Both the position numbers and the translations under genes were made by a program. A DNA stretch of 64,000 bases from Macrostomum hystrix (Eukaryota; Animalia; Platyhelminthes). This document shows positions 1 to 63,950 of the stretch, piece by piece. Below the pieces are notes generated by a model. It was not told the DNA's origin and searched no databases. It was given only the letters and a program-made list of their open reading frames with translations. Each line of letters opens with the position of its first letter. The first letter of the stretch is position 1. Where the stretch lies: the NCBI GenBank assembly GCA_950097015.1, contig CATNEN010000001.1:25792001-25856000 (forward strand), written 5' to 3'.

Positions 1-386
1 GAAAGTGCTTCCTGACTGGACACCACAGGAACTGAAGAAAATTGCCAAGGTGTATAATAAGCAAACATCGTCCATTTATTATCTGGACCTAGAGTTACCA
101 GAAAACCGCTCAAGGAGCCATTCGGAGACCTCGGAAAGTACTTGTACAACTGAAGTGAGCTCGAAGCAAAGTCGAAAATTTTCCTTCACTTGCCTGAAAA
201 ACCCAGACAATATTTTGCCAGCTCTCACACTGTTGTCAATGATTCTTGCTGTGCCAGTTGGCCTTTCGATTCACCGACTGGAGCCCAGCGGCCTGACTGT
301 CGAGCTTATCAGCCTACCGGGTGAATTGCTGATCAACATGCTCAACCTGATGGTTTTTCCGTTGCTTTTCTCCTCACTAGTGTCCG
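1..386 (+). CDS. SLC1A: Divergent SLC1A-family transporter copy 1, exon 1 (N-terminus, TM1-TM2; ATG lies just before the window)
   Basis: LPGELLINMLNLMVFPLLFSSLVSG matches the SLC1 TM2 motif (FPGELLMRMLxMLILPLIISSLITG); donor G|GTTCGT at 386/387, phase 1; start inferred from copy 2. Symbol is family-level only. Confidence 0.9.
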
Positions 387-694: not shown

Positions 695-914
695 GGTTGT
701 CTAATCCGAAAATGAAATCTATAAACCGGATTTGCGTCTTTATAATGGTATATTTCTTCTTTTCGTGCTTGGCTGCTGTGTTAGTTGGCATGATTCTAAC
801 GGTCATTATTCAGCCAGGAAACAATTACTTAAAGAAAGAACCCGCGGCCAGCGGCTACAGGACCCGTGAAAGCAAAAGCAGCGAAGTGCTAGAAACTATG
901 CTGGACCTAATTCG
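695..914 (+). CDS. SLC1A: SLC1A-like copy 1, exon 2 (TM3 and start of extracellular loop)
   Basis: CCAG|GG acceptor, GMILTVIIQPG...MLDLIR, donor CG|GTGCGT; phases join exons 1 and 3 in frame. Confidence 0.9.
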
Positions 915-1007: not shown

Positions 1008-4000
1008 ATAGCAATCCATTGTTATTTCCCTTGATACCTTCTGCATGGAGCAGATTAGCAATCCAAATCCATTGATACCTTCTGCATGGAGTAGATTAGC
1101 AATCCAAATCCCTTGATACATTCTGCATGGAGTAGATTAGCAATCCAAATCCCTTGATACCTTCTGCATGGAGTAGATTAGCAATCCAAATCCCTTGATA
1201 CATTCTGCATGGAGTAGATTAGCAATCCAAATCCCTTGATACCTTCTGCATGGAGTAGATTAGCAATCCAAATCCATTGATACATTCTGCATGGAGTAGA
1301 TTAGCAATCCAAATCCATTGATACCTTCTGCATGGAGTAGATTAGCAATCCAAATCCATTGATACATTCTGCATGGAGTAGATTAGCAATCCAAATCCAT
1401 TGATACCTTCTGCATGGAGTAGATTAGCAATCCAAATCCATTGATGCTTTCTGCATGGAGTAGACTAGCAATCCAAATCACTTGATACCTTCTGCATGGA
1501 GTAGATTAGCAATCCAAATCCATTGATACATTCTGCATGGAGTAGATTAGCAATCCAAATCACTTGATACCTTCTGCATGGAGCAGATTAGCAATCCAAT
1601 TCCATTGATGCTTTCTGCATGGAGTAGATTAGCAATCCAAATCCATTGATACCTTCTGCATGGAGTAGATTAGCAATCCAAATCCATTGATGCTTTCTGC
1701 ATGGAGTAGATTAGCAATCCAAATCCATTGATACCTTCTGCATGGAGTAGATTAGCAATCCAAATCCATTGATACCTTCTGCATGGAGTAGACTAGCAAT
1801 CCAAATCACTTGATACCTTCTGCATGGAGTAGATTAGCAATCCAAATCCATTGATGCTTTCTGCATAGAGTAGATTAGCAATCCAAATCACTTGATACCT
1901 TCTGCATGGAGTAGATTAGCAATCCAAATCCATTGATACCTTCTGCATGGAGTAGATTAGCAATCCAAATCTATTGATACCTTCTGCATGGAGTAGACTA
2001 GCAATCCAAATCACTTGATACCTTCTGCATGGAGTAGATTAGCAATCCAAATCACTTGATACCTTCTGCATGGAGTAGATTAGCAATCCAAATCCATGGA
2101 TGCTTTCTGCATGGAGTAGATTAGCAATCCAAATCCATTGATGCTTTCTGCATGGAGTAGATTAGCAATCCAAATCCATTGATGCTTTCTGCATGGAGTA
2201 GACTAGCAATCCAAATCACTTGATACCTTCTGCATGGAGTAGATTAGCAATCCAAATCCATTGATACATTCTGCATGGAGTAGATTAGCAATCCAAATCA
2301 CTTGATACCTTCTGCATGGAGTAGAGTAGCAATCCAAATCCATTGATGCTTTCTGCATGGAGTAGATTAGCAATCCAAATCCATTCATACCTTCTGCATG
2401 GAGTAGATTAGCAATCCAAATCCATTGATGCTTTCTGCACGGAGTAGATTAGCAATCCAAATCACTTGATACCTTCTGCATGGAGTAGATTAGCAATCCA
2501 AATCCATTGATGCTTTCTGCATGGAGTAGATTAGCAATCCAAATCACTTGATACCTTCTGCATGGAGTAGATTAGCAATCCAAATCCATTGATACCTTCT
2601 GCATGGAGTAGATTAGCAATCCAAATTACTTGATACCTTCTGCATGGAGTAGATTAGCAATCCAAATCCATTGATACCTTCTGCATGGAGTAGATTAGCA
2701 ATCCAAATCACTTGATACCTTCTGCATGGAGTAGATTAGCAATCCAAATCACTTGATACCTTCTGCATGGAGTAGATTAGCAATCCAAATCCATTGATAC
2801 CTTCTGCATGGAGTAGATTAGCAATCCAAATCCATTGATGCTTTCTGCATGGAGTAGATTAGCAATCCAAATCACTTGATACCTTCTGCATGGAGTAGAT
2901 TAGCAATCCAAATCACTTGATACCTTCTGCATGGAGTAGATTAGCAATCCAAATCACTTGATACCTTCTGCATGGAGTAGATTAGCAATCCAAATCACTT
3001 GATACCTTCTGCATGGAGTAGATTTGCAATCCAAATCCATTGATGCTTTCTGCATGGAGTAGATTTGCAATCCAAATCCATTGATACCTTCTGCATGGAG
3101 TAGATTAGCAATCCAAATCCATTGATACCTTCTGCACGGAGTAGATTAGCAATCCAAATCACTTGATACCTTCTGCATGGAGTAGATTAGCAATCCAAAT
3201 CCATTGATACCTTCTGCATGGAGTAGATTAGCAATCCAAATCCATTGATACTTTCTGCATGGAGTAGACTAGCAATCCAAATCACTTGATACCTTCTGCA
3301 TGGAGTAGATTTGCAATCCAAATCCATTGATGCTTTCTGCATGGAGTAGATTTGCAATCCAAATCCATTGATACCTTCTGCATGGAGTAGATTAGCAATC
3401 CAAATCCATTGATACCTTCTGCACGGAGTAGATTAGCAATCCAAATCACTTGATACCTTCTGCATGGAGTAGATTAGCAATCCAAATCCATTGATACCTT
3501 CTGCATGGAGTAGATTAGCAATCCAAATGCATTGATACTTTCTGCATGGAGTAGATTAGCAATCCAAATCACTTGATACCTTCTGCATGGAGTAGATTAG
3601 CAATCCAAATCCATTGATGCTTTCTGCATGGAGTAGATTAGCAATCCAAATCACTTGATACCTTCTGCATGGAGTAGATTAGCAATCCAAATCCATTGAT
3701 GCTTTCTGCATGGAGTAGATTAGCAATCCAAATCCATTGATACCTTCTGCATGGAGTAGATTAGCAATCCAAATCCATTGATACATTCTGCATGGAGTAG
3801 ACTAGCAATCCAAATCACTTGATACCTTCTGCATGGAGTAGATTAGCAATCCAAATCCATTGATGCTTTCTGCATGGAGTAGATTAGCAATCCAAATTAC
3901 TTGATACCTTCTGCATGGAGTAGATTAGCAATCCAAATCCATTGATACCTTCTGCATGGAGTAGATTAGCAATCCAAATCACTTGATACCTTCTGCATGG

Positions 4001-5256
4001 AGTAGATTTGCAATCCAAATCCATTGATGCTTTCTGCATGGAGTAGATTTGCAATCCAAATCCATTGATACCTTCTGCATGGAGTAGATTAGCAATCCAA
4101 ATCCATTGATACCTTCTGCACGGAGTAGATTAGCAATCCAAATCACTTGATACCTTCTGCATGGAGTAGATTAGCAATCCAAATCCATTGATACCTTCTG
4201 CATGGAGTAGATTAGCAATCCAAATGCATTGATACTTTCTGCATGGAGTAGATTAGCAATCCAAATCACTTGATACCTTCTGCATGGAGTAGATTAGCAA
4301 TCCAAATCCATTGATGCTTTCTGCATGGAGTAGATTAGCAATCCAAATCACTTGATACCTTCTGCATGGAGTAGATTAGCAATCCAAATCCATTGATGCT
4401 TTCTGCATGGAGTAGATTAGCAATCCAAATCCATTGATACCTTCTGCATGGAGTAGATTAGCAATCCAAATCCATTGATACATTCTGCATGGAGTAGACT
4501 AGCAATCCAAATCACTTGATACCTTCTGCATGGAGTAGATTAGCAATCCAAATCCATTGATGCTTTCTGCATGGAGTAGATTAGCAATCCAAATTACTTG
4601 ATACCTTCTGCATGGAGTAGATTAGCAATCCAAATCCATTGATACCTTCTGCATGGAGTAGATTAGCAATCCAAATCACTTGATACCTTCTGCATGGAGT
4701 AGATTAGCAATCCAAATCACTTGATACCTTCTGCATGGAGTAGATTAGCAATCCAAATCACTTGATACCTTCTGCATGGAGTAGATTAGCAATCCAAATC
4801 CATTGATACCTTCTGCATGGAGTAGATTAGCAATCCAAATCCATTGATGCTTTCTGCATGGAGTAGATTAGCAATCCAAATCACTTGATACCTTCTGCAT
4901 GGAGTAGATTAGCAATCCAAATCACTTGATACCTTCTGCATGGAGTAGATTAGCAATCCAAATCACTTGATACCTTCTGCATGGAGTAGATTAGCAATCC
5001 AAATCACTTGATACCTTCTGCATGGAGTAGATTTGCAATCCAAATCCATTGATGCTTTCTGCATGGAGTAGATTTGCAATCCAAATCCATTGATACCTTC
5101 TGCATGGAGTAGATTAGCAATCCAAATCCATTGATACCTTCTGCATGGAGTAGATTAGCAATCCAAATCCATTGATGCTTTCTGCATGGAGTAGATTAGC
5201 AATCCAAATCCATTGATGCTTTCTGCATGGAGCAGATTAGCAATCCAAATCCCTGG
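1008..5256. repeat. 41-bp minisatellite (AGCAATCCAAATCCATTGATACCTTCTGCATGGAGTAGATT), about 100 copies, intron 2
   Basis: Direct reading; CTGCATGG at 1041 and 1082 gives period 41. Confidence 0.97.
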
Positions 5257-5291: not shown

Positions 5292-6657
5292 GTCTTCGAT
5301 AAAGTGTCAGAATTTTGTCAGAGCCACAGGCTAGAAATCAATATGCAAAAAACTAAGGTTATTAGCTGTTGCCCTGACCCATCAAAGACGGCTAACAAAC
5401 TATTTCTGCAGGGACAACTGTTAGATAGCGTCAAAGAATGGAAATTTCTTGGCTTTCACATCAATGCTAAAGGAACCGTGGATTCCCATGCCACAGAGAT
5501 TAACAAAAAATGTGGATACCCTATTCGTCTCTTAAGGAAATTAGCCAGCCATGGGGCGGTCAGATACAACCAGCTCATGCTGTACTGCACGGCAATGATA
5601 GAAAGCATAGCTCTGTACGCCTCTGAGGCCTGGGGGGCTTTTGTCTCGTGGAACCTGGGTCCTTGGGACCGCTGTCTTTTTGAAAGAGTAAACGTCAGGT
5701 GCTGTAAAGCCATACTACAAGCCAGCCAAAATACGGATGGCAACGGGGCCCGCTCGGAGTTAGGCAGATTGCCTTTATTATACAACATCCAGAAAAGAAG
5801 CATTTCGTACTGGGCCTCCATAACAAGCCGGCCGGACTCCATAATTTCCAAGTTATTGGCGGACCAAACATACAGTGATGTTGGAATCAAAGCAAAGACC
5901 AACAATGACGTTATGCTGAACTGCAGAGGCATTAGTCCTGCAAAAGCAATTGGAAACCACAGGAAAAATTTCGTTTCTCAGTTTGATACCCATTGGAGAC
6001 AAAGGACACAGAACTCAAGCAAACTAAGTCACTTCTATTACTCCTATTACTTATATTATTACTTATATTACTTACTTATTACTTCTATTACTTAAGTCAC
6101 TAACATTGCGAACTGCGTGACCGAAAATTCCGTATGTAAATAGATTATGTAGGAAGTGCAAAACAGAAGTTGAAAACGAGGTCCACTTCCTTTTTAAGTG
6201 CACTTGGAATAAGTATAGCGCAGCACGTTCGAAATTTGAGACGGAAGTTTCTGGGAAAACCCCCAATTTCATATCCTTAACAGCAGAAGAAAAATCTAAC
6301 TACATAATGGCTCAAGACGATAGGGAAACCGCTGAAGCTTTAGCAAAATACGGTACATCATAGAAATATCTAAAATAAGGGAACAGCTGCCCTGAGACTA
6401 CGAGATCTTACTAGCATTCAACAATAGATATTTCATATTTTGTTTTATCCCTGCCGTCCCTTGTGTTTTTACTGCTCTTATTTTTAATACCTTTGCTTTC
6501 CCTTCCCAGCTCGATATTTGATTCCTACTAAACTTCGCTTTTTATGTTGCTTTTCGTTGTTCATTTAAATGTGTTGTTAAAAAATATATATTAAAAAAAA
6601 TCAGCACCCATACACCCAAAAATCAGCACTCGTAGATGGCGTGCGCGTTTTAATAAT
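5292..6657 (+). mobile_element. 5'-truncated non-LTR retrotransposon (CR1/L2-group-like ORF2 C-terminus)
   Basis: ORF 5304-6095 has RT-thumb motifs (LEINMQKTKVI, WKFLGFHI, LYASEAWG, RSELGRLPL); CCHC-type RLCRKCKTEVENEVHFLFKC near 6142-6201; (TAA)n tail; 12-bp TSD AATAATAAATAA at 5280-5291 and 6658-6669; single-copy empty site at 62516-62527. Confidence 0.9.
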
Positions 6658-6723: not shown

Positions 6724-6851
6724 AAACATTTTCCCAGATGGCTTACTTCAAGCAGCATTTCGCAAAAATAAATTTACTGTAAAATACAGCAATGACACCA
6801 ATGGCTTAGTGCAGATCGAGAATAATTATGTTGAAGGGATGAACTTGCTGG
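6724..6851 (+). CDS. SLC1A: SLC1A-like copy 1, exon 3 (TM4a/b, glycosylated loop)
   Basis: TTTCAG|A; RNIFPDGLLQAAF...NDT...EGMNLL matches RNMFPxNLVQACF...GMNVLG; donor G|GTAAGT. Confidence 0.9.
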
Positions 6852-6927: not shown

Positions 6928-7054
6928 CTTGCGTCAGTTTCTCAATTTTCTTCGGTTCGGTGATAAAACGCTTGTCAAATCACACGGGAGACCTGATTGA
7001 CCTGATGGTTGCCATAAACGACACTTGCTGCATGATGGTGCGGGTCATAACTTG
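6928..7054 (+). CDS. SLC1A: SLC1A-like copy 1, exon 4 (TM4c-TM5)
   Basis: TTTCAG|CT; ACVSFSIFFGSVI...MMVRVITW; donor TG|GTGAGT. Confidence 0.88.
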
Positions 7055-7090
7055 GTGAGTCCTCGGTGCAATCTCATGACCAAAAAAGCA

Positions 7091-8686
7091 ACTGACCCAA
7101 TCTCTAACTGACCCATCTCTAACTGACCCAATCTATAACTGACACAATCTCTAACTGACCCAATCTCTATCTGACCCAATCTCTATCTGACCCAATCTCT
7201 AACTGACCCAATCTCTATCTGAACCAATCTATAACTGACCCAATCTCTATCTGACCCAATCTCTATCTGACCCAATCTATAACTGACCCAATCTCTATCT
7301 GAACCAATCTCTAACTGACCCAATCTCTATCTGAACCAATCTATAACTGACCCAATCTCTATCTGAACCAATCTATAACTGACCCAATCTCTATCTGAAC
7401 CAATCTATAACTGACCCAATCTCTATCTGACCCAATCTCTATCTGACCCAATCTATAACTGACCCAATCTCTATCTGAACCAATCTATAACTGACCCAAT
7501 CTCTATCTGACCCAATCTCTATCTGACCCAATCTATAACTGACCCAATCTCTATCTGAACCAATCTCTAACTGACCCAATCTCTATCTGACCCAATCTCT
7601 ATCTGACCCAATCTCTAACTGACCCAATCTCTATCTGACCCAATCTCTAACTGACCCAATCTCTAACTGACCCATCTCTAACTGACCCATCTCTAACTGA
7701 CCCAATCTCTAACTGACCCATCTCTAACTGACCCATCTCTAACTGACCCATCTCTAACTGACCCATCTCTAACTGACCCAATCTCTAATTGACCCATTCT
7801 ATAACTGACCCAATCTCTATCAGACCCAATCTCTATCTGACCCAATCTCTAACTGACCCAATCTCTATCTGACCCAATCTCTAACTGACCCAATCTCTAA
7901 CTGACCCATCTCTAACTGACCCATCTCTAACTGACCCAATCTCTAACTGACCCATCTCTAACTGACCCATCTCTAACTGACCCATCTCTATCTGACCCAT
8001 CTCTAACTGACCCATCTCTATCTGACCCAATCTCTATCTGACCCAATCTCTAACTGACCCATCTCTAACTGACCCATCTCTAACTGACCCAATCTCTAAC
8101 TGACCCATCTCTAACTGACCCATCTCTAACTGACCCATCTCTATCTGACCCATCTCTAACTGACCCAATCTCTATCTGACCCAATCTCTAACTGACCCAA
8201 TCTCTATCTGACCCAATCTCTAACTGACCCAATCTCTAACTGACCCATCTCTAACTGACCCATCTCTAACTGACCCAATCTCTAACTGACCCATCTCTAA
8301 CTGACCCATCTCTAACTGACCCATCTCTATCTGACCCATCTCTAACTGACCCATCTCTAACTGACCCATCTCTAACTGACCCATCTCTATCTGACCCATC
8401 TCTAACTGACCCATCTCTATCTGACCCATCTCTATCTGACCCATCTCTAACTGACCCAATCTCTATCTGACCCAATCTCTAACTGACCCAATCTCTATCT
8501 GACCCAATCTCTAACTGACCCATCTCTAACTGACCCATCTCTAACTGACCCATCTCTAACTGACCCATCTCTATCTGACCCATCTCTAACTGACCCATCT
8601 CTAACTGACCCATCTCTATCTGACCCATCTCTATCTGACCCATCTCTAACTGACTCAATCTCTATCTGACCCAATCTCTAACTGAT
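7091..8686. repeat. 15/16-bp minisatellite ACTGACCC(A)ATCTCTA, intron 4
   Basis: Direct reading; about 100 copies. Confidence 0.96.
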
Positions 8687-8826: not shown

Positions 8827-9270
8827 GTACACACCGGTTGGGGTGTTCTCGTTACTGATGAAAACTACATTGGATATGGAGGAATTGAGCAAGAAACCAT
8901 CTACGAAAAAGATATTTCAAGAACTTGGCTACTTCTTACTGACTGTGTTAATTGGCTTTGTATTGCAAACCTGCCTTCAGGCATTGTCTTACCTGGTTCT
9001 GGTTAACAGGAGTCCGATCAACATTTTTCTGGGCACCTTCCAGGCTTGTGTGACGTCTTTTGGCACCGCATCCTCAGCTGCCACCCTGCCGATCACTTTC
9101 CATTGCACTGAGGACAAGCTGGGCATTGATAAGAGAATCACTAAAATTGTGCTGCCCATTGGTACAACAGTAAACATGAACGCAGCTGCGCTGTACATCG
9201 CTGCGGCTGGTATTTTCGTGGCGCAGGTTTATGACATCAGACTTACCCCTGTTCGGATAATAGCCGCCAG
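8827..9270 (+). CDS. SLC1A: SLC1A-like copy 1, exon 5 (TM5 end, TM6, HP1, TM7)
   Basis: WYTPVGVFSLL, HP1 motif GTASSAATLPITFHC, GIDKRITKIVLPIGTTVNMN; AAG|G acceptor, AG|GTGAGA donor. Confidence 0.93.
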
Positions 9271-10062: not shown

Positions 10063-10205
10063 AGATAGATTCGGCACAGTCGTCAATGTCATGGGCGATG
10101 TCTTTTGTGCCGCGATTCTGCAGCACATTTGCACATTGGATGAAGAGAGCCCCTCGGAGATTCCGAACAGCGACATGGCTGAGGAGTTAAAAGAAATTGA
10201 CGAAG
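10063..10205 (+). CDS. SLC1A: SLC1A-like copy 1, exon 7 (TM8b)
   Basis: TTGCAG|A; IDRFGTVVNVMGDVFCAAILQH matches DRxRTxxNVxGD; donor G|GTAAGT. Confidence 0.88.
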
Positions 10206-10436
10206 GTAAGTTAACAAAAAAGAATACTTTTTAAATAAGAGTACTAGTTAACAGCTTCTTGCAAATCGTTTGTAGTCTTTGGATCTTTTATAAGATCAAA
10301 CTGTACATCTGTCTCATCTAGCTATTCGTCTGTCTGAGTATTTAAGCAATTCTTATTTTAATACATCAGAAACATTCTGATGAATACATAAAATGAACCC
10401 GATGCTTTCATGTAACCCCTGCTATTACATTTTCAG

Positions 10437-14990: not shown

Positions 14991-16130
14991 GCTCGCACCG
15001 GCGGGACACAGCGCCTGTGAGGTATGAGTCAGTCCAGGCCCACGGTAAAACGACGATTTTACCGTCGCTTTGTTTAAATAATTATCTATGAATAAATAAA
15101 CAAAAATGAGCTTCATCAAGCTTCACGAGCTTCAACCCCGTGAAATTCACTGCTTCACCGACGGTTCGTAAATCAACTCGGTCTCTGGTTTCGGCTACTG
15201 CATTATGTCCGGAGGGAAAACTGTGGCGACCTTGTCCCAGCACACCGGTATAAACTCTACCGTTCTCCAGAACGAAGTTCTCGCCATCAGCTCCTGCGCC
15301 CTGGAGCTGATCAATCAAAATGTCCACGGAGCAGAAATTGTCCTCCACTCGGACCTTGGATCCATGCCCTTGGACGCACGCACACCTGCTCGCGCACAGT
15401 CCTCGACTGCGTCGCGCAACACAATCGCTTAGGGACCCACGACAAGGTGTTCCTAAGTTGGATTCCAGGGCACTCTGGCCACCCTGGTAACGAATTGGCC
15501 GACAGCCTCGCCAAGGCCCCCTCGCCCCGTGCCTGCGGTCTCCACCCCTACCGCCGTCGTCACCACTCGGATTAACCATTGGTTGGCCTCAAAAGCACAA
15601 AGACAGGTGGATCAATACCGCCGATTGTCGGCAGTCTCGCGCTGCTGTTCCTTGTCCCTCCACTGCCCTTCGCAAAGCCCTGCTTGGACTTAACCGCAGG
15701 GACATCAGGGCAGTCCCCATGGCCCTCTTTGGCCACGGCTGTTTCGCCAGGCACCGCTTCATGCAAGGCAAAATCCGCAGTGAGGAGAGCCCTTTCTGCC
15801 TCTCCTACGTTGAGGATGCAGAGCATTTTATTTGCGACTGCCCCGCCTTCACTCAGGACAGGCTCACCTATCTCGGCCCAAACCCGGATCTCTCCGACGT
15901 TTTCAGGCCTGATAACATCTGCCAGCTCGTCCGTTACCTAAGGGCCACCGGGCAAGCGACTCTCCACCTCCTGGACTCTCCGGAGGAGGACCGCGCTGCG
16001 GACGCCGGCATCACGGATCCCCCTGCGCGACACCGCAGCTTTAGTTGCCTGTGGTCGTCAGGAGCTAGCGGAATGGGCGGCAACGCCTCCCCGCTGCATC
16101 CGAAGGATGACTTCTGCAGCTAAGTCAAGT
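14991..16130 (+). mobile_element. 5'-truncated, decayed RNase H-containing non-LTR retrotransposon (I/R1/LOA-like group)
   Basis: RNase H motifs FTDGS, STVLQNEVLAI, VLHSD, WIPGHSGHPGNELADSLAK; zinc-knuckle remnant EDAEHFICDCPAF; (AAGTC)n tail; 13-bp TSD CAGGTAAAATTTA at 14978-14990 and 16131-16143; stops and frameshifts. Confidence 0.9.
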
Positions 16131-16380
16131 CAGGTAAAATTTAACGTTATAAATCAGTAGAAACTGATCAGTAATCAGTTAAGTCAGTAATCAACTGATG
16201 AATTAAAATTTCAATTTTTTGCAGAATTGTCTTTTTCCCCGAGAGTCTTAATGCATTTTTCGATACATATCGGCTTAAAATTAACTTTCAGGATTGACTG
16301 TCAAATTGTCAAATTTTCTAAGTGAAATTTTCTAATCAATTTTAACAAATATTTTAATAAACGTGCTTATCTTTCTCCAG

Positions 16381-17051
16381 GCCTGCACAAAGATCTGCAA
16401 GGACATCAACCGCATTAAGATTAGCATGGAACGCGGCGAGACAGTGGTCTTAATTAACATGGACTCACTCTACGAGTCTTTGTACGACGTGATGAATCAA
16501 TACTACGAGATCTGCGGCGAAGATCGCTTTGTAGACTTGGGCCTCGGCACCCATCGTCTAAAGTGCAAAGTGCACAGGAATTTCCGCATTGTAGTCATCG
16601 TCGAACGGGACACTGTCATGAACAAATTTCCCATTCCACTAATCAATCGAGTGGATAAGCATAGACTGTCCTGCGAGTAGTTGCTAAGGGAATACGACTG
16701 AAATCTGTGCTCAAAACTGTTGGATTGGGCTAAAAGCTTCCTACCCTCTTCTGGTAGCAGATTGCAGCAATCTTCAATCACCACTGCCAGGCTTTTGAAC
16801 ACAGTATTTGTCGGCTATCACGAAGATCCCTACTGTTGGAATATTCCCAGCTGGCCAATGCGGAGCGAGTGCGGCCTGTTCAATTGGCTCTGCTGGCCGC
16901 TTGTACACCAGAGAGTCTGGTGCGATTGGACCAGACACCGTTGGAGTCTCAGAAGGAGGACCTGAGCCGGCTGTATCATCGTGACGATTAACACTCCGAC
17001 ATTGAAGCACTCTTGAAGTGTCGCGCCTACGGTGAAAAGAAGTTTGTCCAG
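16381..17051 (+). pseudogene. RNF213: RNF213-like exon C (later AAA module), with stops and frameshifts
   Basis: INRIKISMERGETVVLINMDSLYESLYDVMNQYY...VDLGLGTHRLKCKVHRNFRIVVI...FPIPLINR is diagnostic; TAG at 16678-16680 and a further TGA; VFVGYHED and CTPESLVRL lie in different frames; 3' end approximate. Confidence 0.9.
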
Positions 17052-17261
17052 GTGAGAGAGAGAAGCAAAATAACCAATTCATCGATTCTTTATCAGCGAT
17101 TCTGATATTGATCGCGGCTAGACTGCTTTCACCATAGTCATTTATCGATTGAGATACTGTTGGTTTTAGGATTCTTGAGATCTCAGTTAAATTATGTTTT
17201 TTCTAAATAAATATCAGTTATAAGTTCGCTTTATAACTTTGCCGATGGTGAGGAGCAGATT

Positions 17262-17375
17262 TACACACCCTGCGTACCTGTGTACACCCCTGTGTACCTG
17301 TGTACACACCTGTGTACTTTTATCCACACCCTATGTACCTGTGTACACACCCTGTGTACCTGTGTACACACCTGC
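17262..17375. repeat. ~20-bp repeat TGTACACACCCTGTGTACC
   Basis: About 5 degenerate copies. Confidence 0.8.
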
Positions 17376-17825
17376 GATTGTTTCCTTAGTGTACCTTAGA
17401 GTACCGATAATGCCATTCTTCTGAGCCATAAAGTGTGTAATGAGCATGTTTCGGGCGTACTGCTATTCAGTCCACGGACAGGGGAAACCGCATACACCCT
17501 TAACAGTAGAAACACCACGGGGTATTTCAAATATCCGTATTTTTCTCATTTCTGTATCAACCAGTCGCCATGAAAATCCTGTTAACGGTTACAATTTTCC
17601 GCTCTATCCGATGCGACAACTTCCAGAATCACAAAACTATTCTCGTCGCAGTGTTTGGTGGCAAAATCCACCAATACGAGCGCGTAAGCATAGTTATTTT
17701 TCTGCTCACAAAATTTCATGATGTAGCTCTAGCTAGCTTTGTCGGCTATTATTATTTATTATTAAAATATTAAAACAATATGGATTCTCCATAGAGGTTA
17801 ATGCTGAGCAATGTTAGTTGTCCTT

Positions 17826-17872
17826 GACCTTCAAGTCATTAGTCCGATGCTCTAACCACTAAGCTAATGAGC
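17826..17872 (-). other. tRNA-derived fragment (tRNA-Ile-like 5' half; SINE head or pseudo-tRNA)
   Basis: Minus strand GCTCATTAGCTTAGTGGTTAGAGCATCGGACTAATGACTTGAAGGTC has an A box and a CTAATGA anticodon-loop-like segment; no T arm or B box follows. Confidence 0.55.
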
Positions 17873-17958
17873 GGAACTACTGTTAAGTAGTATGATCCAT
17901 GTGTAGCGGTTCTAATCCGATAATTTCACTGCGTACTCAATTAAATACTATTTTTCAG

Positions 17959-18238
17959 GCCCTATTTGAGACATTCTGCGAACAGCTCAACGACCGCAAG
18001 CGTGATCTCAATCAAACTCGAACCCGGGCCCACTGGCTAGCCCGACTGTCCAATTGTCAGGGCGTGGTGCAGTCCATGCTAGACCAATACGCGCCGAGTT
18101 CTGCGAATCAAGCAGACACTCACCGAGCGTCGTGGGATCGAATCCAGTGCGTGGCATTTTTCCTGCGTCACGTGTCGATTCCATTAGACTCGGAGGAGCT
18201 GTTTGACGAGTCGCTGATCAAACCCATCCAGCTGTGGG
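17959..18238 (+). pseudogene. RNF213: RNF213-like exon D (E3 module, upstream of the RING position)
   Basis: HWLARLSN...RASWDRIQCVAFFLRHV resembles RNF213 WLQLVKNL...RTQWSRIFSTALFVEHV; TTTCAG| and |GTGAGT. Confidence 0.7.
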
Positions 18239-18558
18239 GTGAGTATACTTTTATTGATTTTTGCCTATAAAAAGCGAAAATAAATATTTAAAAAAATCTA
18301 CTTCAAAGATGCTAAAACGCGAAAAAATCTCTTTTCGAATTGAAAGATCCATTAAAGTTTTGGAAGATTTTTTTAATACGAGTAAAGCCAACGAATCTGT
18401 TCGCACGAACATGGGGTCATGGGGTAAGTGAAAAAATATATTGTCTAAGTACCAAAATTAACGAAATAATAAAAGAAACAATTAATATTACCATCAAACT
18501 AGTAAAAAACTTACAAAAACTGTTAACGCTAATTGACGAGAAGTCATTATTAGAAGTA

Positions 18559-18666
18559 TGTTCGCTACATAATTTACGGATGTTCGCTACATAATTTACG
18601 GATGTTCGCTACATAGTTAGCGGATGTTCGCTACATAATTTACGGATGTTCGCTACATAGTTCGCT
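18559..18666. repeat. 22-bp repeat TGTTCGCTACATAATTTACGGA, about 5 copies
   Basis: Direct reading. Confidence 0.88.
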
Positions 18667-18760
18667 TCCTGACGGACGCCGCGTCTCGTCTGTGCTTCGG
18701 CAATCCGAGGCAGAGCCCGGAGCCTAAGCTGTGCGCGCATCTTCTGAACTCGGTTACTCG
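18661..18760 (+). pseudogene. RNF213: RNF213-like exon E (E3 module, downstream of the RING position)
   Basis: RFLTDAASRLCFGNPRQSPEPKLCAHLL resembles FFIDLVSTICFKDNAPPEKEVIESLL; donor |GTAAGC; 5' boundary uncertain because it abuts a repeat. Confidence 0.6.
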
Positions 18761-18777
18761 GTAAGCACTCCGTCTGT

Positions 18778-19376
18778 AGCAGTGACGAGTCTATGGAACA
18801 GTAGCTAGTCTATAGAACAGTAGCTAGTCTATAGAACAGTAGCTAGTCTATGGAGCAGTGACTAGTCTATAGAACAGTAGCTAGTCTATAGAACAGTAGC
18901 TAGTCTATGGAACAGTAGCTAGTCTATGGAACAGTAGCTAGTCTATAGAACAGTGACGAGTCTATAGAACAGTAGCTAGTCTATAGAACAGTGACGAGTC
19001 TATAGAACAGTAGCTAGTCTATAGAACAGTAGCTAGTCTATGGAACAGTAGCTATTCTATAGAACAGTGACGAGTCTATAGAACAGTAGCTAGTCTATAG
19101 AACAGTAGCTAGTCTATAGAACAGTAGCTAGTCTTTGGAACAGTGACTAGTCTATAGAACAGTGACTAGTCTATAGAACAGTAGCTAGTCTATAGAACAG
19201 TAGCTAGTCTATGGAACAGTAGCTAGTCTATAGAACAGTAGCTAGTCTATAGAACAGTAGCTAGTCTATAGAACAGTAGCTAGTCTATGGAACAGTAGCT
19301 AGTCTATAGAACAGTAGCTAGTCTATGGAACAGTGACTAGTCTATAGAACAGTAGCTAGTCTATGGAACAGTAGCT
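18778..19376. repeat. 19-bp minisatellite CTATAGAACAGTAGCTAGT, about 31 copies
   Basis: Direct reading. Confidence 0.95.
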
Positions 19377-19439
19377 TCAGGTTTCCTGAACCTTCAGGCC
19401 CACTTAACTTTCAGGCTCCCTTAAGTTTCAGGCTCCGTT

Positions 19440-20420
19440 GGCTGCGAAGAGCGGCTGGCCAGGCGTCCGCAGGCGAGCATCAGTGCCGGCGACGGGAAAA
19501 ATGCTGACCTCGGCGCCCGTGTCGACCAGGAAGCGCCGGCCCGTCTGGACATCGGGGATGAGCAGCAGGCTGCTGTTACCGGCCGCCGAGCTGATCACTG
19601 ATCAATGAGCAGGCGGAGGCGGCGGCTGCTCTGCAGCGGGATGCGGCACGGAGGCTGCGAACGGCTGCGACCGGCTCGCCCACAGCTTATCGCCTCTTGC
19701 GCTGCGGCCCGCGGGTCGCTGAAGTCCACAGTGGCCATCATCATCCTGACGTCGGCGGGCAGCTGCTGGCGGAAAAGTTCCTCGAACAGGAGGCACGGGG
19801 GGATGGTCACCTAGCAGAGCGAGCATTTCGTCCATGAGCTCTGAGGGACGCTTGTCGCCGAGGCCGGACATTCCGAGGAGGTGGCTGGCCCGCTGCTGTC
19901 AAGTGAGGCCAAACGTGCCGAGCAGGCGGTCCTTCAGGCTCTGGTACTTGTCCTCCTCCGGCGGACGCTCCAGCACATCGAGTAGTCGCTCGGCTGTGAT
20001 CTGGTCGAGAGCAGCGACTACGTGCGTGTACTTGGTGTTGTCCTCTGTGATTCGCCGCAGAGTGAACTGGGCTTCGGCCTGAATAAACCAGGCCCGGGGC
20101 TGCGAGGCCCAAAACGTGGGCAGTTTGAGTGCAACGGCTGACTCAGTCATTCCTCAGCACGGCTGGGGTAGTCGGGCTCACGAATTTAGTGTCTCGCAAA
20201 TGAAATGCATTGCGCGAGAAAGGGTAAATTTATTTATTAGTCAAACAGATCTTAAATAGCGCTTCGGAGCGTGGGGAGGTGCGCGAAAGGTGGCGAGAGT
20301 CCGTAACCCCCCGGCTTAGCGAGCCGGTGGGTTGGGTGCACCCACCCCCCCAGCCAGGCGGCCCGGCGTTTGAGTGCATATGCACCCAGAGTCGCGCCGC
20401 GTGCAGACCTGGCCGCCACA
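19440..20420 (-). mobile_element. Decayed Ty3/Gypsy LTR retrotransposon remnant (LTR, gag, protease start)
   Basis: gag MTESAVALKLPTFWASQPRAWFIQAEAQF...GLGDKRPSELMDEML; aspartic protease GRRFLVDTGAEVSIFP at about 19495-19550; LTR-like segment begins TGTGGCGG at 20420 with TATTTAA and AATAAA; in-frame stops; pol and second LTR absent. Confidence 0.85.
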
Positions 20421-21284
20421 ATATATAATTTATTGGGACATACCTTCAATTTCTGACGAAATATCAGGGAATTGTATGAATCCACATATTTGAACACTGG
20501 TATGAAAAAAATCATTTGTTTTCTGACCAAAAATATAATAACTTTCTTGAATAATCTAACATCTTTTGATTCAACTGGGATTCTAGTGTTTCTTAGAAGA
20601 AGGCCTGGGATTTCTAAGAAATCAACAATACTTAATTTGATTTGATTATCAGGGAATGAACTAAAATAGATAATTTAATCATCCATCCTACTATACTAAA
20701 TGTCTAAGATCTGTCTGTCCATCTGAAACGCTCTAGCGAATGAATGGCTAGACCAATTTTTTTCCTGTTTTCACCAAAAAGTGCCAACTCATCCAAGGAT
20801 TAGACTGATCAAATTTCATCATTCTGTCTCAATGCCAAGGGTATTAAATATTCGAAAAACATGATTTTTTCAAAGGTCAAACCATCTTGGCCTATTGAGA
20901 ATTTTACTCACTGCCACTGAATTAGAATTGCGTCGTCAAATTGCGCAACAACCCCTAGCTGATTGAATTTGAAGCCTGCACTCTGGCGACAAATTGGAAA
21001 TAAATGTACACAACCAACCGCGAGACTGAGTGTACTCTATTTTCTCACTTCATTGTACAAAGCCAGAACTTTGAGAATTCATTTTATAAGGCTGATTTTT
21101 GCACCCACTAACCAACAGTCGGAATAGCCGATGTGTAGGCACTAGGAATAGGTTAGGCTAGGCTAGGGTTCGATTCTGAACTGCGTCAAATCATTTAGAC
21201 AAATTTTCTGCCAGTAGTGATTGAAGATTATTTTAATTTATTTTTTTCATTTCGTTAATAAAATATCATAAATCATAGCACACC

Positions 21285-22810
21285 AGAGTTTGAATCATGG
21301 CTGAACAAGAGTTTGAATCATGGCTAAACCAGAGTTTGAATCATGGCAAAACCAGAGTTTGAATCATGGCTAAACCAGCGTTTGAATCATGGCTAAACCA
21401 GAGTTTGAATCATGGCTAAACTAGAGTTTGAATCATGGCTAAAACAGAGTTTAAATCATGGCAAAACCAGAGCTTGAATCATGGCAAAACCAGCGTTTGA
21501 ATCATGGCTAAACCAGAGCTTGAATCATGGCTAAACCAGAGCTTGAATCATGGCTAAACCAGAGCTTGAATCATGGCAAAATCAGAGCTTGAATCATGGC
21601 TTAACCAGAGTTTGAATCATGGCTAAACTGGAGTCTGAATCATGGCTAAACCAGAGTCTGAATCATGGCTAAACCAGAGTCTGAATCATGGCTTAACCAG
21701 AGTTTGAATCATGGCTAAACCAGAGTCTGAATCATGGCTAAACCAGAGTCTGAATCATGGCTAAAATAGAGTCTGAATCATGGCTAAACCAGAGTCTGAA
21801 TCATGGCTAAACCAGAGTCTGAATCATGGCTAAACTAGAGTCCGAATCATGGCTAAACCAGAGTCTGAATCATGGCTAAACTAGAGTCTGAATCATGGCT
21901 AAACCAGAGTCTGAATCATGGCTTAACCAGAGTTTGAATCATGGCTAAACCAGAGTCTGAATCATGGCTAAACCAGAGTTTGAATCATGGCAAAAACAGC
22001 GTCTGAATCATGGCTAAACCAGAGCTTGAATCATGGCTAAACCAGAGTTTGAATCATGGCTGAACCAGCGTTTGAATCATGGCTAAACCAGAGTTTGAAT
22101 GAAGGCTAAACCCGAGTTTGAATCATGGCAAAACTAGAGTTTGAATCATGGCAAAACCAGAGTTTGAATCATGGCTAAACCAGAGTTTGAATCATGGCAA
22201 AAACAGCGTCTGAATCATGGCTAAACCAGAGCTTGAATCATGGCTAAACCAGAGTTTGAATCATGGCTGAACCAGCGTTTGAATCATGGCTAAACCAGAG
22301 TTTGAATGAAGGCTAAACCCGAGTTTGAATCATGGCAAAAACAGAGTTTGAATCATGGCAAAACCAGAGTTTGAATCATGGCTAAACCAGAGTTTGAATC
22401 ATGGCTAAACCAGCGTTTGAATCATGGCTAAACCAGAGTTTGAATCATGGCAAAACCAGAGTTTGAATCATGGCTAAAGCAGAGTTTGAATCATGGCTGA
22501 ACCAGCGTTTGAATCATGGCTAAACCAGAGTTTGAATGAAGGCTAAACCCGAGTTTGAATCATGGCAAAACCAGAGTTTGAATCATGGCTAAACCAGAGT
22601 TTGAATCATGGCTAAACCAGAGTCTGAATCATGGCTAAAAACCAGCGTTTGAATCATGGCTAAACTAGCGTTTGAATCATGGCTAAAGCAGAGCTTGAAT
22701 CATAGCCAACCAGAGTTTGAATCATAGCAAAACGAGAGTTTGAATCATAGCCCACCAGGGTTTAAAACAGGGCGAAATCTGAGTTTGAATCTTGGCTTAC
22801 CCAGCGTTTG
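21285..22810. repeat. Satellite A, 23 bp (GAATCATGGCTAAACCAGAGTTT), unit 1
   Basis: Period 23 (GAATC at 21361 and 21384). Further arrays at about 25075-27712, 29977-31947, 35817-37563, 39828-42465, 44730-46700, 50570-51430, 53262-54979. Confidence 0.96.
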
Positions 22811-22819
22811 AAAAATCAA

Positions 22820-24404
22820 CGTCAACTGGGGAGTCATCATCAAAATGGGGATCATGGTAAACTGTGGGATAATCGTCAACTGGGGGATCATGGTAAACTT
22901 GGGGATCATTGTCAACTGGGAGATCATCATCAACGGGGGGATCATTGTCAACTGGGGGATCATTGTCAACGGGCGGGATCATTGTCAACTGGGGAATCAT
23001 TGTCAACTGGGGGATCATTGTCAACTGGGGGATCATTGTCAACTGGGTGATCATCATCAACTGGGGGATCATTGTCAACTGGGGGAACATTGTCAACTGG
23101 AGGAACATTGTTAACTGGGGATCATCATCAATGGGGAGTCATCATCAACTGGGGGATCATTGTGAACTGGGGGATCTTTGTTAACTGGGGGATCATTGTG
23201 AACTGGGGGATCATTGTCAACTGGGGGATCATTGTCAACTGGGGGATCATTTTCAACTGGGGGATCATCATCAACTGGGGGATCATCATCAACTGGGGGA
23301 TCATTGTGAACTGGGGGATCATTGTCAACTGGGGGATCATTGTCAACTGTGGGATCATTGTCAACGGGCGGGATCATTGTCAATTGGGGGAACATTGTCA
23401 ACTGGACGAACATTGTTAACTGGGGATCATCATCAATGGGGAGTCATCATCAACTGGGGGATCATTGTGAACTGGAGGATCTTTGTCAACTGGGGGATCA
23501 TTGTCAACTGGGGGATCATTGTCAACTGGGGGATCATTGTCAACTGGGAGATCATCATCAACGGGGGGATCATCATCAAATGGGGGATCATTGTCAACTG
23601 TGGGATCATTGTCAACTGGGGGATCATTGTCAACTGGGAGATCATTGTCAACTGGGGGATTATTGTCAACTGGGGGTTCATTGTCAACTGGGGGATCATT
23701 GTCAACTGGGGGATCATCATCAACTGGGGGATCATCATCAACTGGGGGATCATTGTGAACTGGGGGATCATTGTCAACTGGGGGATCATTGTCAACTGTG
23801 GGATCATTGTCAACGGGCGGGATCATTGTCAACTGGGGGATCATTGTCAACTGGGGGATCATTGTCAACTGGGGGATCATTGTCAACTGGGGGATCATCA
23901 TCAACTGGGGGATCATTGTCAACTGGGGGAACATTGTCAACTGGGGGTTCATTGTCAACTGGGGGATCATTGTCAACTGGGGAATCATTGTCGACTGGGG
24001 GATCATTGTCAACTGGAAGATCATTGTCAACTGGGGGATCATTGTCAACTGGGGGTTCATTGTCAACTGGGGGTTCATTGTCAACTGTGGGATCATTGTC
24101 AACGGACGGGATCATTGTCAACTGGGGGATCATTGTCAACTGGGGGATCATTGTCAACTGAGGAATCATTGTCGACTGGGGGATCATTGTCAACTGGGGG
24201 ATCATTGTCAACTGTGGGATCATCATCAACTGGGGGATCATTGTCAACTGGGGGATCATTGTCAACTGGGGAATCATTGTCAACTGGAAAATCATTGTCA
24301 ACTGGGTGATCATTGTCAACTGGGGAATCATTGTCAACTAGGGGATCATCATCAACTGGGGTATTATTGGCAACTGGGTGATCATTGTCAGCTGGGGGAT
24401 CATT
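22820..24404. repeat. Satellite B, 18 bp (ACTGGGGGATCATTGTCA), unit 1
   Basis: Period 18. Further arrays at about 27722-29306, 31957-34079, 37573-39157, 42475-44059, 46710-48832, 51433-52566, 54989-56424. Confidence 0.96.
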
Positions 24405-24477
24405 ACAGCTGCTAAAAGGTATATACTGGACGAATTAAAAATATTTCTGCTCCCCGAAGGGGGGCAAAACTTGCTAG

Positions 24478-27400: not shown

Positions 27401-29379
27401 GAACCAGCGTTTGAATCATGGCTAAACCAGAGTTTGAATGAAGGCTAAACCCGAGTTTGAATCATGGCAAAACCAGAGTTTGAATCATGGCTAAACCAGA
27501 GTTTGAATCATGGCTAAACCAGAGTCTGAATCATGGCTAAAAACCAGCGTTTGAATCATGGCTAAACTAGCGTTTGAATCATGGCTAAAGCAGAGCTTGA
27601 ATCATAGCCAACCAGAGTTTGAATCATAGCAAAACGAGAGTTTGAATCATAGCCCACCAGGGTTTAAAACAGGGCGAAATCTGAGTTTGAATCTTGGCTT
27701 ACCCAGCGTTTGAAAAATCAACGTCAACTGGGGAGTCATCATCAAAATGGGGATCATGGTAAACTGTGGGATAATCGTCAACTGGGGGATCATGGTAAAC
27801 TTGGGGATCATTGTCAACTGGGAGATCATCATCAACGGGGGGATCATTGTCAACTGGGGGATCATTGTCAACGGGCGGGATCATTGTCAACTGGGGAATC
27901 ATTGTCAACTGGGGGATCATTGTCAACTGGGGGATCATTGTCAACTGGGTGATCATCATCAACTGGGGGATCATTGTCAACTGGGGGAACATTGTCAACT
28001 GGAGGAACATTGTTAACTGGGGATCATCATCAATGGGGAGTCATCATCAACTGGGGGATCATTGTGAACTGGGGGATCTTTGTTAACTGGGGGATCATTG
28101 TGAACTGGGGGATCATTGTCAACTGGGGGATCATTGTCAACTGGGGGATCATTTTCAACTGGGGGATCATCATCAACTGGGGGATCATCATCAACTGGGG
28201 GATCATTGTGAACTGGGGGATCATTGTCAACTGGGGGATCATTGTCAACTGTGGGATCATTGTCAACGGGCGGGATCATTGTCAATTGGGGGAACATTGT
28301 CAACTGGACGAACATTGTTAACTGGGGATCATCATCAATGGGGAGTCATCATCAACTGGGGGATCATTGTGAACTGGAGGATCTTTGTCAACTGGGGGAT
28401 CATTGTCAACTGGGGGATCATTGTCAACTGGGGGATCATTGTCAACTGGGAGATCATCATCAACGGGGGGATCATCATCAAATGGGGGATCATTGTCAAC
28501 TGTGGGATCATTGTCAACTGGGGGATCATTGTCAACTGGGAGATCATTGTCAACTGGGGGATTATTGTCAACTGGGGGTTCATTGTCAACTGGGGGATCA
28601 TTGTCAACTGGGGGATCATCATCAACTGGGGGATCATCATCAACTGGGGGATCATTGTGAACTGGGGGATCATTGTCAACTGGGGGATCATTGTCAACTG
28701 TGGGATCATTGTCAACGGGCGGGATCATTGTCAACTGGGGGATCATTGTCAACTGGGGGATCATTGTCAACTGGGGGATCATTGTCAACTGGGGGATCAT
28801 CATCAACTGGGGGATCATTGTCAACTGGGGGAACATTGTCAACTGGGGGTTCATTGTCAACTGGGGGATCATTGTCAACTGGGGAATCATTGTCGACTGG
28901 GGGATCATTGTCAACTGGAAGATCATTGTCAACTGGGGGATCATTGTCAACTGGGGGTTCATTGTCAACTGGGGGTTCATTGTCAACTGTGGGATCATTG
29001 TCAACGGACGGGATCATTGTCAACTGGGGGATCATTGTCAACTGGGGGATCATTGTCAACTGAGGAATCATTGTCGACTGGGGGATCATTGTCAACTGGG
29101 GGATCATTGTCAACTGTGGGATCATCATCAACTGGGGGATCATTGTCAACTGGGGGATCATTGTCAACTGGGGAATCATTGTCAACTGGAAAATCATTGT
29201 CAACTGGGTGATCATTGTCAACTGGGGAATCATTGTCAACTAGGGGATCATCATCAACTGGGGTATTATTGGCAACTGGGTGATCATTGTCAGCTGGGGG
29301 ATCATTACAGCTGCTAAAAGGTATATACTGGACGAATTAAAAATATTTCTGCTCCCCGAAGGGGGGCAAAACTTGCTAG
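24478..29379 (+). mobile_element. Helitron unit 2 (type-B head with (TGCT)n)
   Basis: TCCACTATAC start; GGCTCAACCGATTTT core motif; hairpin plus CTAG end. Confidence 0.9.
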
Positions 29380-56930: not shown

Positions 56931-57209
56931 GTGGTTTCTCGGCTGATGGGCAGTGGTTTGTATTGGTCGACAGCTTGTTGTGGGTTGGCCATCCATTGCT
57001 TTCTAGCCAGCTTATTTTGTTCCCTTGTCCCTTCGCTTGTTCCCTTTTATAGCCAACTTGCAGCATTTTAGTATATAAGACTAGCATCCGCGCCCCCAAA
57101 AAATTAACCCGCAGCTTCACAGAGCCACCTTGCAGCAAACTTGCAGCAAACTTGCAGCATTTCGTTCACAACACTTGCATCCGCGCCCCTAAAAATGGTT
57201 TACCCGCAG

Positions 57210-60492: not shown

Positions 60493-60907
60493 ATGAGACG
60501 ATTCCAAGAAATCAAAGAAGAGAAAGTGCTTCCTGACTGGACACCACAGGAACTGAAGAAAATTGCCAAGGTGTATAATAAGCAAACATCGTCCATTTAT
60601 TATCTGGACCTAGAGTTACCAGAAAACCGCTCAAGGAGCCATTCGGAGACCTCGGAAAGTACTTGTACAACTGAAGTGAGCTCGAAGCAAAATCGAAAAT
60701 TTTCCTTCACTTGCCTGAAAAACCCAGACAATATTTTGCCAGCTCTCACACTGTTGTCAATGATTCTTGCTGTGCCAGTTGGCCTTTCGATTCACCGACT
60801 GGAGCCCAGCGAACTGACTGTCGAGCTTATCAGCCTACCGGGTGAATTGCTGATCAACATGCTCAACCTGATGGTTTTTCCGTTGCTTTTCTCCTCACTA
60901 GTGTCCG
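60493..60907 (+). CDS. SLC1A: Divergent SLC1A-like copy 2, exon 1
   Basis: First in-frame ATG (MRRFQEIKEE); near-identical to 1-386 at offset 60521; donor G|GTTCGT. Confidence 0.88.
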
Positions 60908-61544: not shown

Positions 61545-61764
61545 GGTTCTCTAATCCGAAGATAAAATCTATAAGCCGGATTTGCGTCTTCATAATGGTA
61601 TATTTCTTCTTCTTGTGCTTGGCTGCTGTGTCAATCGGCATCATTCTAACGGTCATTATTCAGCCAGGCAACTATTACTTAAAAAAAGAACTCACGGCCA
61701 GAGGCTACGTGACCAATGAAAGCCAAAGCAGCGAAGTGCTTGAACATATGCTGGACCTAATACG
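61545..61764 (+). CDS. SLC1A: SLC1A-like copy 2, exon 2
   Basis: Same boundaries and phase as copy 1 exon 2; open frame. Confidence 0.9.
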
Positions 61765-62581: not shown

Positions 62582-62709
62582 AAACATTTTCCCAGATGAC
62601 TTACTTCAAGCAGCATTTCGCAAAAATAACTTTACTGTAAAATACAGCAATGACACAAATGGCTTAGTGCAGATCGAGAATAATTATGTTGAAGGGATGA
62701 ACTTGCTGG
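62582..62709 (+). CDS. SLC1A: SLC1A-like copy 2, exon 3
   Basis: RNIFPDDLLQAAFRKNNFTVKYSNDT...EGMNLL; AG/GT intact. Confidence 0.9.
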
Positions 62710-62785: not shown

Positions 62786-62912
62786 CTTGCGTCAGTTTCT
62801 CAATTTTCTTCGGTTCGGCAATAAAACGCTTGTCAAATCACACGGGAGACCTGATTGACCTGATGGTTGCCATCAACGACACTTGCTGCATGATGGTGCG
62901 GGTCATAACTTG
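62786..62912 (+). CDS. SLC1A: SLC1A-like copy 2, exon 4
   Basis: ACVSFSIFFGSAI...VITW; AG/GT intact. Confidence 0.88.
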
Positions 62913-63506: not shown

Positions 63507-63950
63507 GTACACACCGGTTGGGGTGTTCTCGTTACTGATTAAAACTACATTGGAAATGAATAAATGGAGCGATGTACCATATGCTAAAGAGATGTTTCAA
63601 CAACTTGGCTACTTCTTACTGACTGTGTTAACTGGCTTTGTATTGCAAACATGCCTTCAGGCATTGTCCTACCTGGTTCTGGTTAAGAGGAGTCCGATCA
63701 AAATTTTTCTGGGCACCTTCCAGGCTTGTGTGACGGCTTTTGGCACCGCATCCTCAGCTGCCACCCTGCCGATCACTTTCCATTGCACGGAGGACAAGCT
63801 GGGCATTGATAAGAGAATCACTAAAATTGTGCTGCCCATTGGTACAGCAGTAAACATGAACGCAGCTGCGATGTACATGGCTGCGTTTGGTGTTTTCATG
63901 GCGCAGGTTTATGACATCAGACTTACCCCTGTTCAGATAATAGCCACCAG
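63507..63950 (+). CDS. SLC1A: SLC1A-like copy 2, exon 5 (gene runs off the window)
   Basis: HP1 GTASSAATLP, TM7 AVNMNAAAMYM; AG/GT intact. Confidence 0.93.

Follow-up and report, generated by a model that had tools for sequence, protein, structure and literature searches.

A young SLC1-derived gene family of Macrostomum hystrix with hypervariable, putatively outward-facing segments and signs of both gene conversion and selection for diversity

The stretch of Macrostomum hystrix DNA analysed here (64,000 nucleotides, positions 25,792,001-25,856,000 of contig CATNEN010000001.1, here C1, in assembly GCA_950097015.1; hereafter the window) carries one complete gene related to the SLC1 transporters, copy 1, whose seven exons run from window position 1 to ~10,205, together with exons 1-5 of a tandem copy 2, which begins at 60,493 and has its exons 6 and 7 beyond the window end (Table 1). 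As carriers, the SLC1 transporters are a textbook case of strong conservation. A first, sequence-only reading of the window had singled out the linker between transmembrane helices 5 and 6 (TM5 and TM6), encoded in exon 5, as a hypervariable extracellular loop at which the two copies diverge almost only by amino acid changes, and had proposed diversifying selection in an expanding family with a recognition role. Here, we describe the family to which both copies belong, in which the linker is one of four segments that concentrate the variation. Diversifying selection on these segments is partly supported, and gene conversion is involved as well.

The counts on which the sequence-only reading was based were made by hand, and a script recount returned the same figures. 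The linkers of copy 1 (MKTTLDMEELSKKPSTKKIFQE) and copy 2 (IKTTLEMNKWSDVPYAKEMFQQ) differ at 12 of 22 residues and at 16 of 66 bases, and all 10 codons that encode the same residue in both are identical in DNA. Over the 147 full codons of exon 5, 24 codons carry replacements and 3 are changed only silently, while the upstream intron differs at 4 of 98 bases (6/141 when counted up to the satellite) and the first hairpin, HP1 (GTASSAATLPITFHC), is identical in the two copies. By the Nei-Gojobori method, exon 5 shows 4.0 silent against 28.0 replacement changes, a ratio of replacement to silent divergence (dN/dS, omega) of 2.3. The statement that the paralogues diverge almost only by amino acid changes in this place needs two qualifications: exons 2 (26/220 bases, 11.8%) and 6 (28/147, 19.0%) are more divergent than exon 5 (32/444, 7.2%), and both carry silent differences, with a Nei-Gojobori dS of 0.19 (omega 0.59) and 0.18, respectively.

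Similarity searches were done exon by exon, with single exons as queries. Exon 5 matches the PF00375 (SDF) profile with 114.5 bits (cut-off 27.9), the matches of the individual exons together cover model positions ~1-365, and exons 2, 5 and 6 align to the solved chains of EAAT1, EAAT2 and EAAT3; an alignment to an ASCT2 chain was also obtained. A search of the genome with exon 5 gave 13 matches at E <= 1e-10, eight of which (76-100% identity) form the subfamily described here, and the remaining five are canonical paralogues with the TM7 motif NMDGT. Four members of the subfamily lie in tandem on C1 (c0 to c3, here copies 0 to 3), two lie on C3 and two on C11, and a truncated C3 duplicate, C3b, is a fragment that retains only 24 exon 5 codons, giving eight exon 5 copies and one fragment on three chromosomes. 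The expansion proposed by the sequence-only reading is thus borne out, and the linker is a hot spot of replacement throughout the family. All eight copies have the same 16-bp satellite in corresponding positions of intron 4, and 85-97% similarity in their intron flanks, which indicates that the family is young.

NMDGT in TM7 is the sodium and substrate site of SLC1. In its place, six of the eight copies have NMNAA, C11a has NKNAA and C3c has NLNAA, and for this reason we file the family as divergent and SLC1-derived rather than as working EAAT or ASCT transporters. The serine-rich motif of HP1 is present (GTASSAATLPITF, aligned to GTSSSSATLPITF of EAAT1) and is nearly invariant across the eight copies. 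Among the TM8 contacts D-x-x-R-T-x-x-N, the D, T and N are kept and the R is a glycine, the junction of exons 6 and 7 having been aligned by eye; the family D and N align to D444 and N451 in TM8 of EAAT3. NMNAA was absent from all 157 proteins compared (the best 150 of 4,045 representative matches and 7 cluster members). Among the public matches listed for exon 5, the ten best have 35-48% identity, and the best that are named come from a mollusc, a fish, arachnids and flatworms. The representative search returned only distant SLC1 proteins and the atlas search only generic SDF clusters. A M. lignano protein resembles another SLC1 gene of the M. hystrix genome. A literature search at the level of abstracts, which is not proof of absence, found no report of this family or of any fast-evolving SLC1 family. 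These genes form a lineage-specific, SLC1-derived family. Elsewhere in the genome, an intronless single open frame of 592 amino acids (C37:1,755,559-1,756,953) matches SDF model positions 8-386; it could be either a retrocopy or an SLC1 gene with a different structure.

The divergence between copies 1 and 2 is a mosaic. Exons 1, 3, 4 and 7 differ at 0-2.3% of bases and the introns at 0.4-8.1%. Exon 7 and its flanks show no difference in 144 + 120 + 120 bases, and the second half of exon 6 differs at 27 of 96 bases, although the introns before and after exon 6 differ at only 2 of 100 and 5 of 120 positions. Over all seven exons, dS is 0.061 and dN 0.063 (Nei-Gojobori). Across the family, the variation is concentrated in four segments, namely the second half of exon 2, most of exon 3, the exon 5 linker and the second half of exon 6. 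With the introns as a yardstick (33/1048 bases between copies 1 and 2), the replacement divergence of the four segments is 6.2-fold and their silent divergence 5.5-fold.

By alignment, the segments correspond to the beginning and the middle part of the TM3-TM4 loop with its N-x-T sequons, to the TM5-TM6 linker, and to a region made of HP2b, the loop between HP2 and TM8, and the top of TM8. Judged by the solved transporters, all four would face outward. When aligned with EAAT1 (chain 5llm_A) and EAAT2, the linker itself begins where TM5 ends on the extracellular side and continues up to TM6, in agreement with the extracellular position given to it by the sequence-only reading, and the variable patch begins at the residue aligned to G297 of GLT-1. 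In PMC3116888, G297 is located at the extracellular end of TM5 and is close to I463, a residue at the top of TM8. The equivalent of I463, placed by offset arithmetic, is near residue 34 of exon 6, in the second, variable half of this exon. Because the two positions are close to each other and both lie in variable segments, the linker and the exon 6 segment may form one surface patch.

Selection was evaluated with codon models in a likelihood framework, in which every segment had a tree of its own and codon frequencies were modelled in four ways. For the four segments pooled, omega ranged from 1.65 to 1.89 (p 0.0003-0.0055), and from 1.8 to 2.1 (p 0.0001-0.003) when copies 1 and 2 were removed, whereas the remainder of the coding sequence, the core, gave values of 0.9-1.0, at no time different from 1. 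As a control, two canonical SLC1 paralogues of the same genome gave an omega of 0.065 in the same exon; the method therefore detects constraint where it is present, and the conservation of ordinary SLC1 genes assumed by the sequence-only reading is seen for this exon in this genome. A cross-check of the one-ratio model M0 against IQ-TREE gave 1.565 and 1.56 for the exon 5 linker. Pairwise Nei-Gojobori values of the segments exceeded 1 in 26 of 28 pairs, which are not independent of each other.

Site models with a tree for each partition preferred a class of positively selected sites (M2a over M1a), with twice the log-likelihood difference (2dl) at 40.0 when the segments were analysed alone, 23.6 with the core alone and 60.5 with all 11 partitions. 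M2a placed 37% of segment sites at omega 4.0, and about one quarter of core sites in a class with omega near 0. A posterior probability of at least 0.8 was assigned to 8 of the 123 sites in the segments and to 12 of the 416 in the core; these are situated in TM7 behind NMNAA, ahead of HP1, within HP2b and in the loop that joins HP2 to TM8. An analysis with one tree per exon (2dl 104) was discarded, since differences in silent rate within exons inflate the test. A grid model in which the silent and the replacement rate of a site could vary separately favoured replacement above silent rates (2dl 31.9) and put 80% of the prior weight on that class; given this weight, its site posteriors are uninformative and were not used.

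Several observations weigh against taking these values as positive selection. When restricted to the five well-aligned copies, the pooled test gave an omega of 1.3-1.5 (p 0.08-0.27), and the pooled signal thus depends on the three copies that diverge most and have insertions and deletions (indels) in their loops. The linker, from which the proposal of diversifying selection had started, is not significant on its own in the full set (omega 1.3-1.7, p 0.18-0.5; p 0.054 with gene-wide codon frequencies), is borderline in the five well-aligned copies (omega ~6-7, p 0.026-0.059), and has no site with a posterior of at least 0.8. The site models were run with our own code, in which branch lengths were taken from M0 and held constant and each partition was treated as free of recombination. 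The borders of the segments were set after the alignment had been viewed, which pushes omega upward, and 13 of the 35 changed segment codons between copies 1 and 2 differ at two bases, a concern as multi-base mutations can mimic selection. Finally, silent divergence between these copies is itself raised in the segments (0.146, 7 changes over 47.8 sites) to about five times that of the core (0.029, 8 over 279.3), mainly in exon 2 and in the second half of exon 6, a pattern that patches of greater age or of foreign origin would explain as well as selection would. The proposal of the sequence-only reading is thus partly supported, by the omega of the pooled segments and by a site class near 4, and for the linker taken alone the support is borderline at most.

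The alternative that survives best holds that the segments are unconstrained outer loops with an omega of 1, shuffled by patchy conversion with no positive selection, so that the loops are older than the overwritten rest of the gene or were imported as patches. The raised silent divergence of the segments and the omega of 0.59 in exon 2 agree with this, as do the modest pairwise values (just 1.1-1.9) and the five-copy pooled test. The genealogy of copy 1 points the same way: its linker is nearest to that of C3a (8/66 bases) and not to copy 2, and in the adjoining intron the order is reversed (6/141 against copy 2, 16/139 against C3a). Patterns in sequence triplets differ between the linker and its flanks (Fisher p 0.0005), as they do when the second half of exon 6 is tested (p 0.000014), and states are shared across contigs, copy 1 having M, E and E in common with C11b, and copies 2 and 3 having VPY in common with C11a. 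A recombination test of the pairwise homoplasy index (PHI) type on five copies with 77 informative sites was not significant (p 0.93), with 47% of site pairs incompatible. The introns and most of the exon sequence of neighbouring copies are homogenised with discordant patches in between, the picture of concerted evolution.

Against conversion without selection stand the pooled omega, above 1 under all four frequency models even when copies 1 and 2 are left out, and the preference for M2a even when every segment has its own tree. Moreover, in linker codons with the same amino acid, five pairs of copies show 0, 0, 1, 0 and 0 silent differences, a single change over 34.3 sites summed. With C3a as third sequence, nine linker changes are private to copy 2, six to copy 1 and only one to C3a, unlike an old, star-like patch. 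The conflict between linker and flanks is partly a matter of unequal rate and partly real. The sequence-only reading had itself named a tract converted from an old paralogue, with matching silent divergence, as the finding that would undo it; conversion is involved, as the site patterns of the linker conflict with those of its flanks, and the matching silent divergence rests on just 5.3 silent sites in the linker, too few to judge. Accelerated replacement and patchy conversion are both at work, in shares that eight sequences do not separate, and we consider conversion with loosened constraint as the whole explanation possible, although doubtful.

A local mutational artefact, caused by multi-base mutations, by small indels that further indels compensate, or by error-prone repair in the vicinity of the satellites of the introns, appears improbable to us. 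Between copies 1 and 2, codons with two or three changed bases are more frequent in the segments (15/35) than in the core (4/24), eight of the 11 in-frame exon indels of the family fall within the four segments, and satellites lie near the variable exons, one of them 140 bases ahead of exon 5 and another in intron 5. However, the intron between satellite and linker is the little-changed stretch of 141 bases already described, and the same four segments are variable in copies on three chromosomes. In addition, none of the 11 exon indels disrupts the frame, a sign of selection on the product.

Stop codons are absent from the exons of every copy, with a neutral expectation of ~9.4 in the core and 17.0 in the segments, no copy has lost a splice acceptor or donor, and only 3 of 19 indels in the intron flanks have lengths that would be in frame. 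The gene-wide dN/dS of approximately 1 is thus seen without a stop or frameshift in any exon, and on these sequence features the evidence favours genes that are maintained. Copy 0 has a 1223-base insertion in exon 5 with a 9-base direct target duplication (C1 ~25,777,147-25,778,369); the most likely origin is the recent insertion of a transposon, by which this copy would be inactivated. Protein searches with exons 1 and 5 were blank among proteins of 0.55-1.75 times the query length, a range that therefore leaves full-length models out of reach, and this result also counts against a maintained family under selection. Decay of a pseudogene family, in keeping with the core omega near 1, the interrupted copy 0, the reduced C3b and the blank protein searches, is disfavoured and very improbable to us in view of the absent stops (Poisson P 0.00008 for the core alone), the contrast between exon and intron indels, the intact splice sites and the quarter of core sites at omega near 0.

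The coordinates of the genes and their features are collected in Table 1. Exon 7 of copy 1 ends either at a donor at 10206 or by read-through to a stop at 10232-10234.

Table 1. Coordinates in the window of the exons, motifs and satellite discussed in the text.
Feature	Position in window	Strand	Remarks
Hypervariable TM5-TM6 linker, copy 1 (exon 5, codons 11-32)	8858..8923	+	script recount; alignment to EAAT1 5llm_A and EAAT2
Same TM5-TM6 linker, copy 2	63538..63603	+	script recount
Copy 1 exon 1: N-terminal tail, TM1-TM2	1..386	+	donor g/gttcgt by eye; start Met 33 bases upstream of window
Copy 1 exon 2: TM3 and beginning of TM3-TM4 outer loop; second half hypervariable	695..914	+	
Copy 1 exon 3: TM3-TM4 outer loop, N-D-T sequon; hypervariable family-wide	6724..6851	+	
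Copy 1 exon 4: TM4, conserved	6928..7054	+	
Copy 1 exon 5: TM5 end, linker, TM6, HP1, TM7 with NMNAA	8827..9270	+	Pfam SDF 114.5 bits
Copy 1 exon 6: HP2, HP2-TM8 loop, TM8 top; second half is the most divergent segment	9529..9675	+	
Copy 1 exon 7: TM8 with DRFGTVVN, C-terminal tail	10063..10205	+	
NMNAA in place of NMDGT, copy 1	9173-9199		all C1 copies
DRFGTVVN, TM8 arginine replaced by glycine, copy 1	10063-10090		all C1 copies
Copy 2 exon 1, from its Met	60493..60907	+	
Copy 2 exon 2	61545..61764	+	
Copy 2 exon 3	62582..62709	+	
Copy 2 exon 4	62786..62912	+	
Copy 2 exon 5	63507..63950	+	
16-bp satellite, intron 4 of copy 1	7090..8685	+	same place in all 8 exon 5 paralogues

The two genes of the window are separated by ~35 kb of satellite arrays and transposon remnants. 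Most of this space is occupied by large arrays (21271-56425) in which 23-bp and 18-bp satellites alternate in higher-order blocks, the blocks at 21271-36677 and 36023-51429 being 99.6% identical across 15.4 kb. A 41-bp satellite in intron 2 has 103 units in copy 1 (1027-5252) and 15.5 units in copy 2 (61859-62492). Uncollapsed haplotypes as the source of the copies were rejected, as the copies are in tandem on one contig and differ in satellite length. Long open frames on both strands at 5304-6095 and ~15000-20200 resemble remnants of retroelements; the one frame that was scanned, at 5304-6092, had no Pfam match.

Just upstream of copy 2, 57049-57602 and 59887-60125 are remnants of the last exons (HP2/TM8, with a canonical AVDW motif). 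They derive from a different, canonical SLC1 gene and have 90-94% DNA identity to the 3' end of the gene on C11. The same remnant is found upstream of copy 1 and of the C11 copies, so the duplicated unit carried the tail of a neighbouring gene along. Upstream of copy 2 the remnant is split by an insertion of ~2.2 kb, which is absent upstream of copy 1, where the remnant is continuous; it contains a 494-amino-acid open frame (58147-59631) with no Pfam match and is probably a mobile element.

The explanation we favour combines selection for diversity with gene conversion in a young family of SLC1 fold, and as a whole we give it about an even chance of being correct. The patch encodes the lengthened, putatively outward-facing TM5-TM6 linker of a lineage-specific, recently multiplied family, the copies of which keep intact reading frames and splice sites. 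Among neighbours, most of each gene, introns included, would be homogenised again and again through gene conversion or unequal exchange, while four segments of the outer face would stay or become different faster than neutral sequence, and short conversion patches would also shuffle loop variants among copies. The data themselves show the family, the identity mosaic, the excess divergence in the four segments, the uninterrupted frames, and an omega of about 1 in the core against values above 1 for the segments when pooled. The most likely cause would be selection for differing outer faces or gate regions, that is, for differing ligands, substrates or partners; we infer that selection, and not drift, keeps the segments different.

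With regard to function, the residues aligned to the contacts of the amino and carboxyl groups are kept (D and N of TM8, HP1), and the D and T of NMDGT as well as the TM8 arginine are lost. If the proteins are carriers, they would probably transport a non-acidic amino acid without the usual sodium coupling. A reading that goes beyond the recognition role put forward by the sequence-only reading, and in which the proteins would be sensors or recognition molecules of SLC1 fold, no longer sodium-coupled carriers, with amino-acid-like ligands or with symbionts, pathogens or mating partners as counterparts, is by analogy conceivable and in our view unlikely. Equally speculative is its counterpart at the level of evolution, by which selection would keep the outer loops and the gate different and conversion would keep the scaffold uniform, as in immune and chemoreceptor families.

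If a young family of SLC1 fold evolves at the neutral rate or faster, this would be an uncommon case of a transporter scaffold put to new use, with changes concentrated on the outer face and the extracellular gate and accompanied by the loss of sodium-site and arginine residues. The family would offer a set of naturally occurring variants in the surroundings of the HP2 gate and of the contact between TM5 and TM8, in which substrates and sodium need can be tested, and a compact example of how gene conversion and selection jointly build constant and variable parts in a gene family.

Homogenised scaffolds with islands of divergence arise when selection opposes conversion at chosen sites, according to established theory. 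The M. hystrix family shares with known cases of concerted evolution the homogenised introns and exons and the short segments that differ at silent as well as replacement sites; here, the pattern is found in a family of SLC1 fold. Compared with the SLC1 transporters of the EAAT and ASCT type (PF00375), it has in common the profile match, the serine-rich motif of HP1 and the D and N of TM8, and differs by NMNAA in place of NMDGT and by glycine in place of the TM8 arginine; relative to EAAT1, its TM5-TM6 linker is six residues longer. Its omega of about 1 or more contrasts with the strong constraint on the canonical paralogues of the same genome.

In the ASCTs, the variable region lies in the TM3-TM4 loop. 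Like the flatworm family, they are without the TM8 arginine. In mammals ASCT1 and ASCT2 are single, otherwise conserved working transporters, whereas the flatworm genes are a young family of paralogues with four variable segments and lost sodium-site residues, and with no known link to a pathogen. The outer surface of ASCT1 and ASCT2 (SLC1A4/5) is used by viral envelope proteins, which take these transporters as retrovirus receptors (PMC9967133). They are the nearest known parallel, a case in which the outer face of an SLC1 protein is drawn into a contest between host and pathogen.
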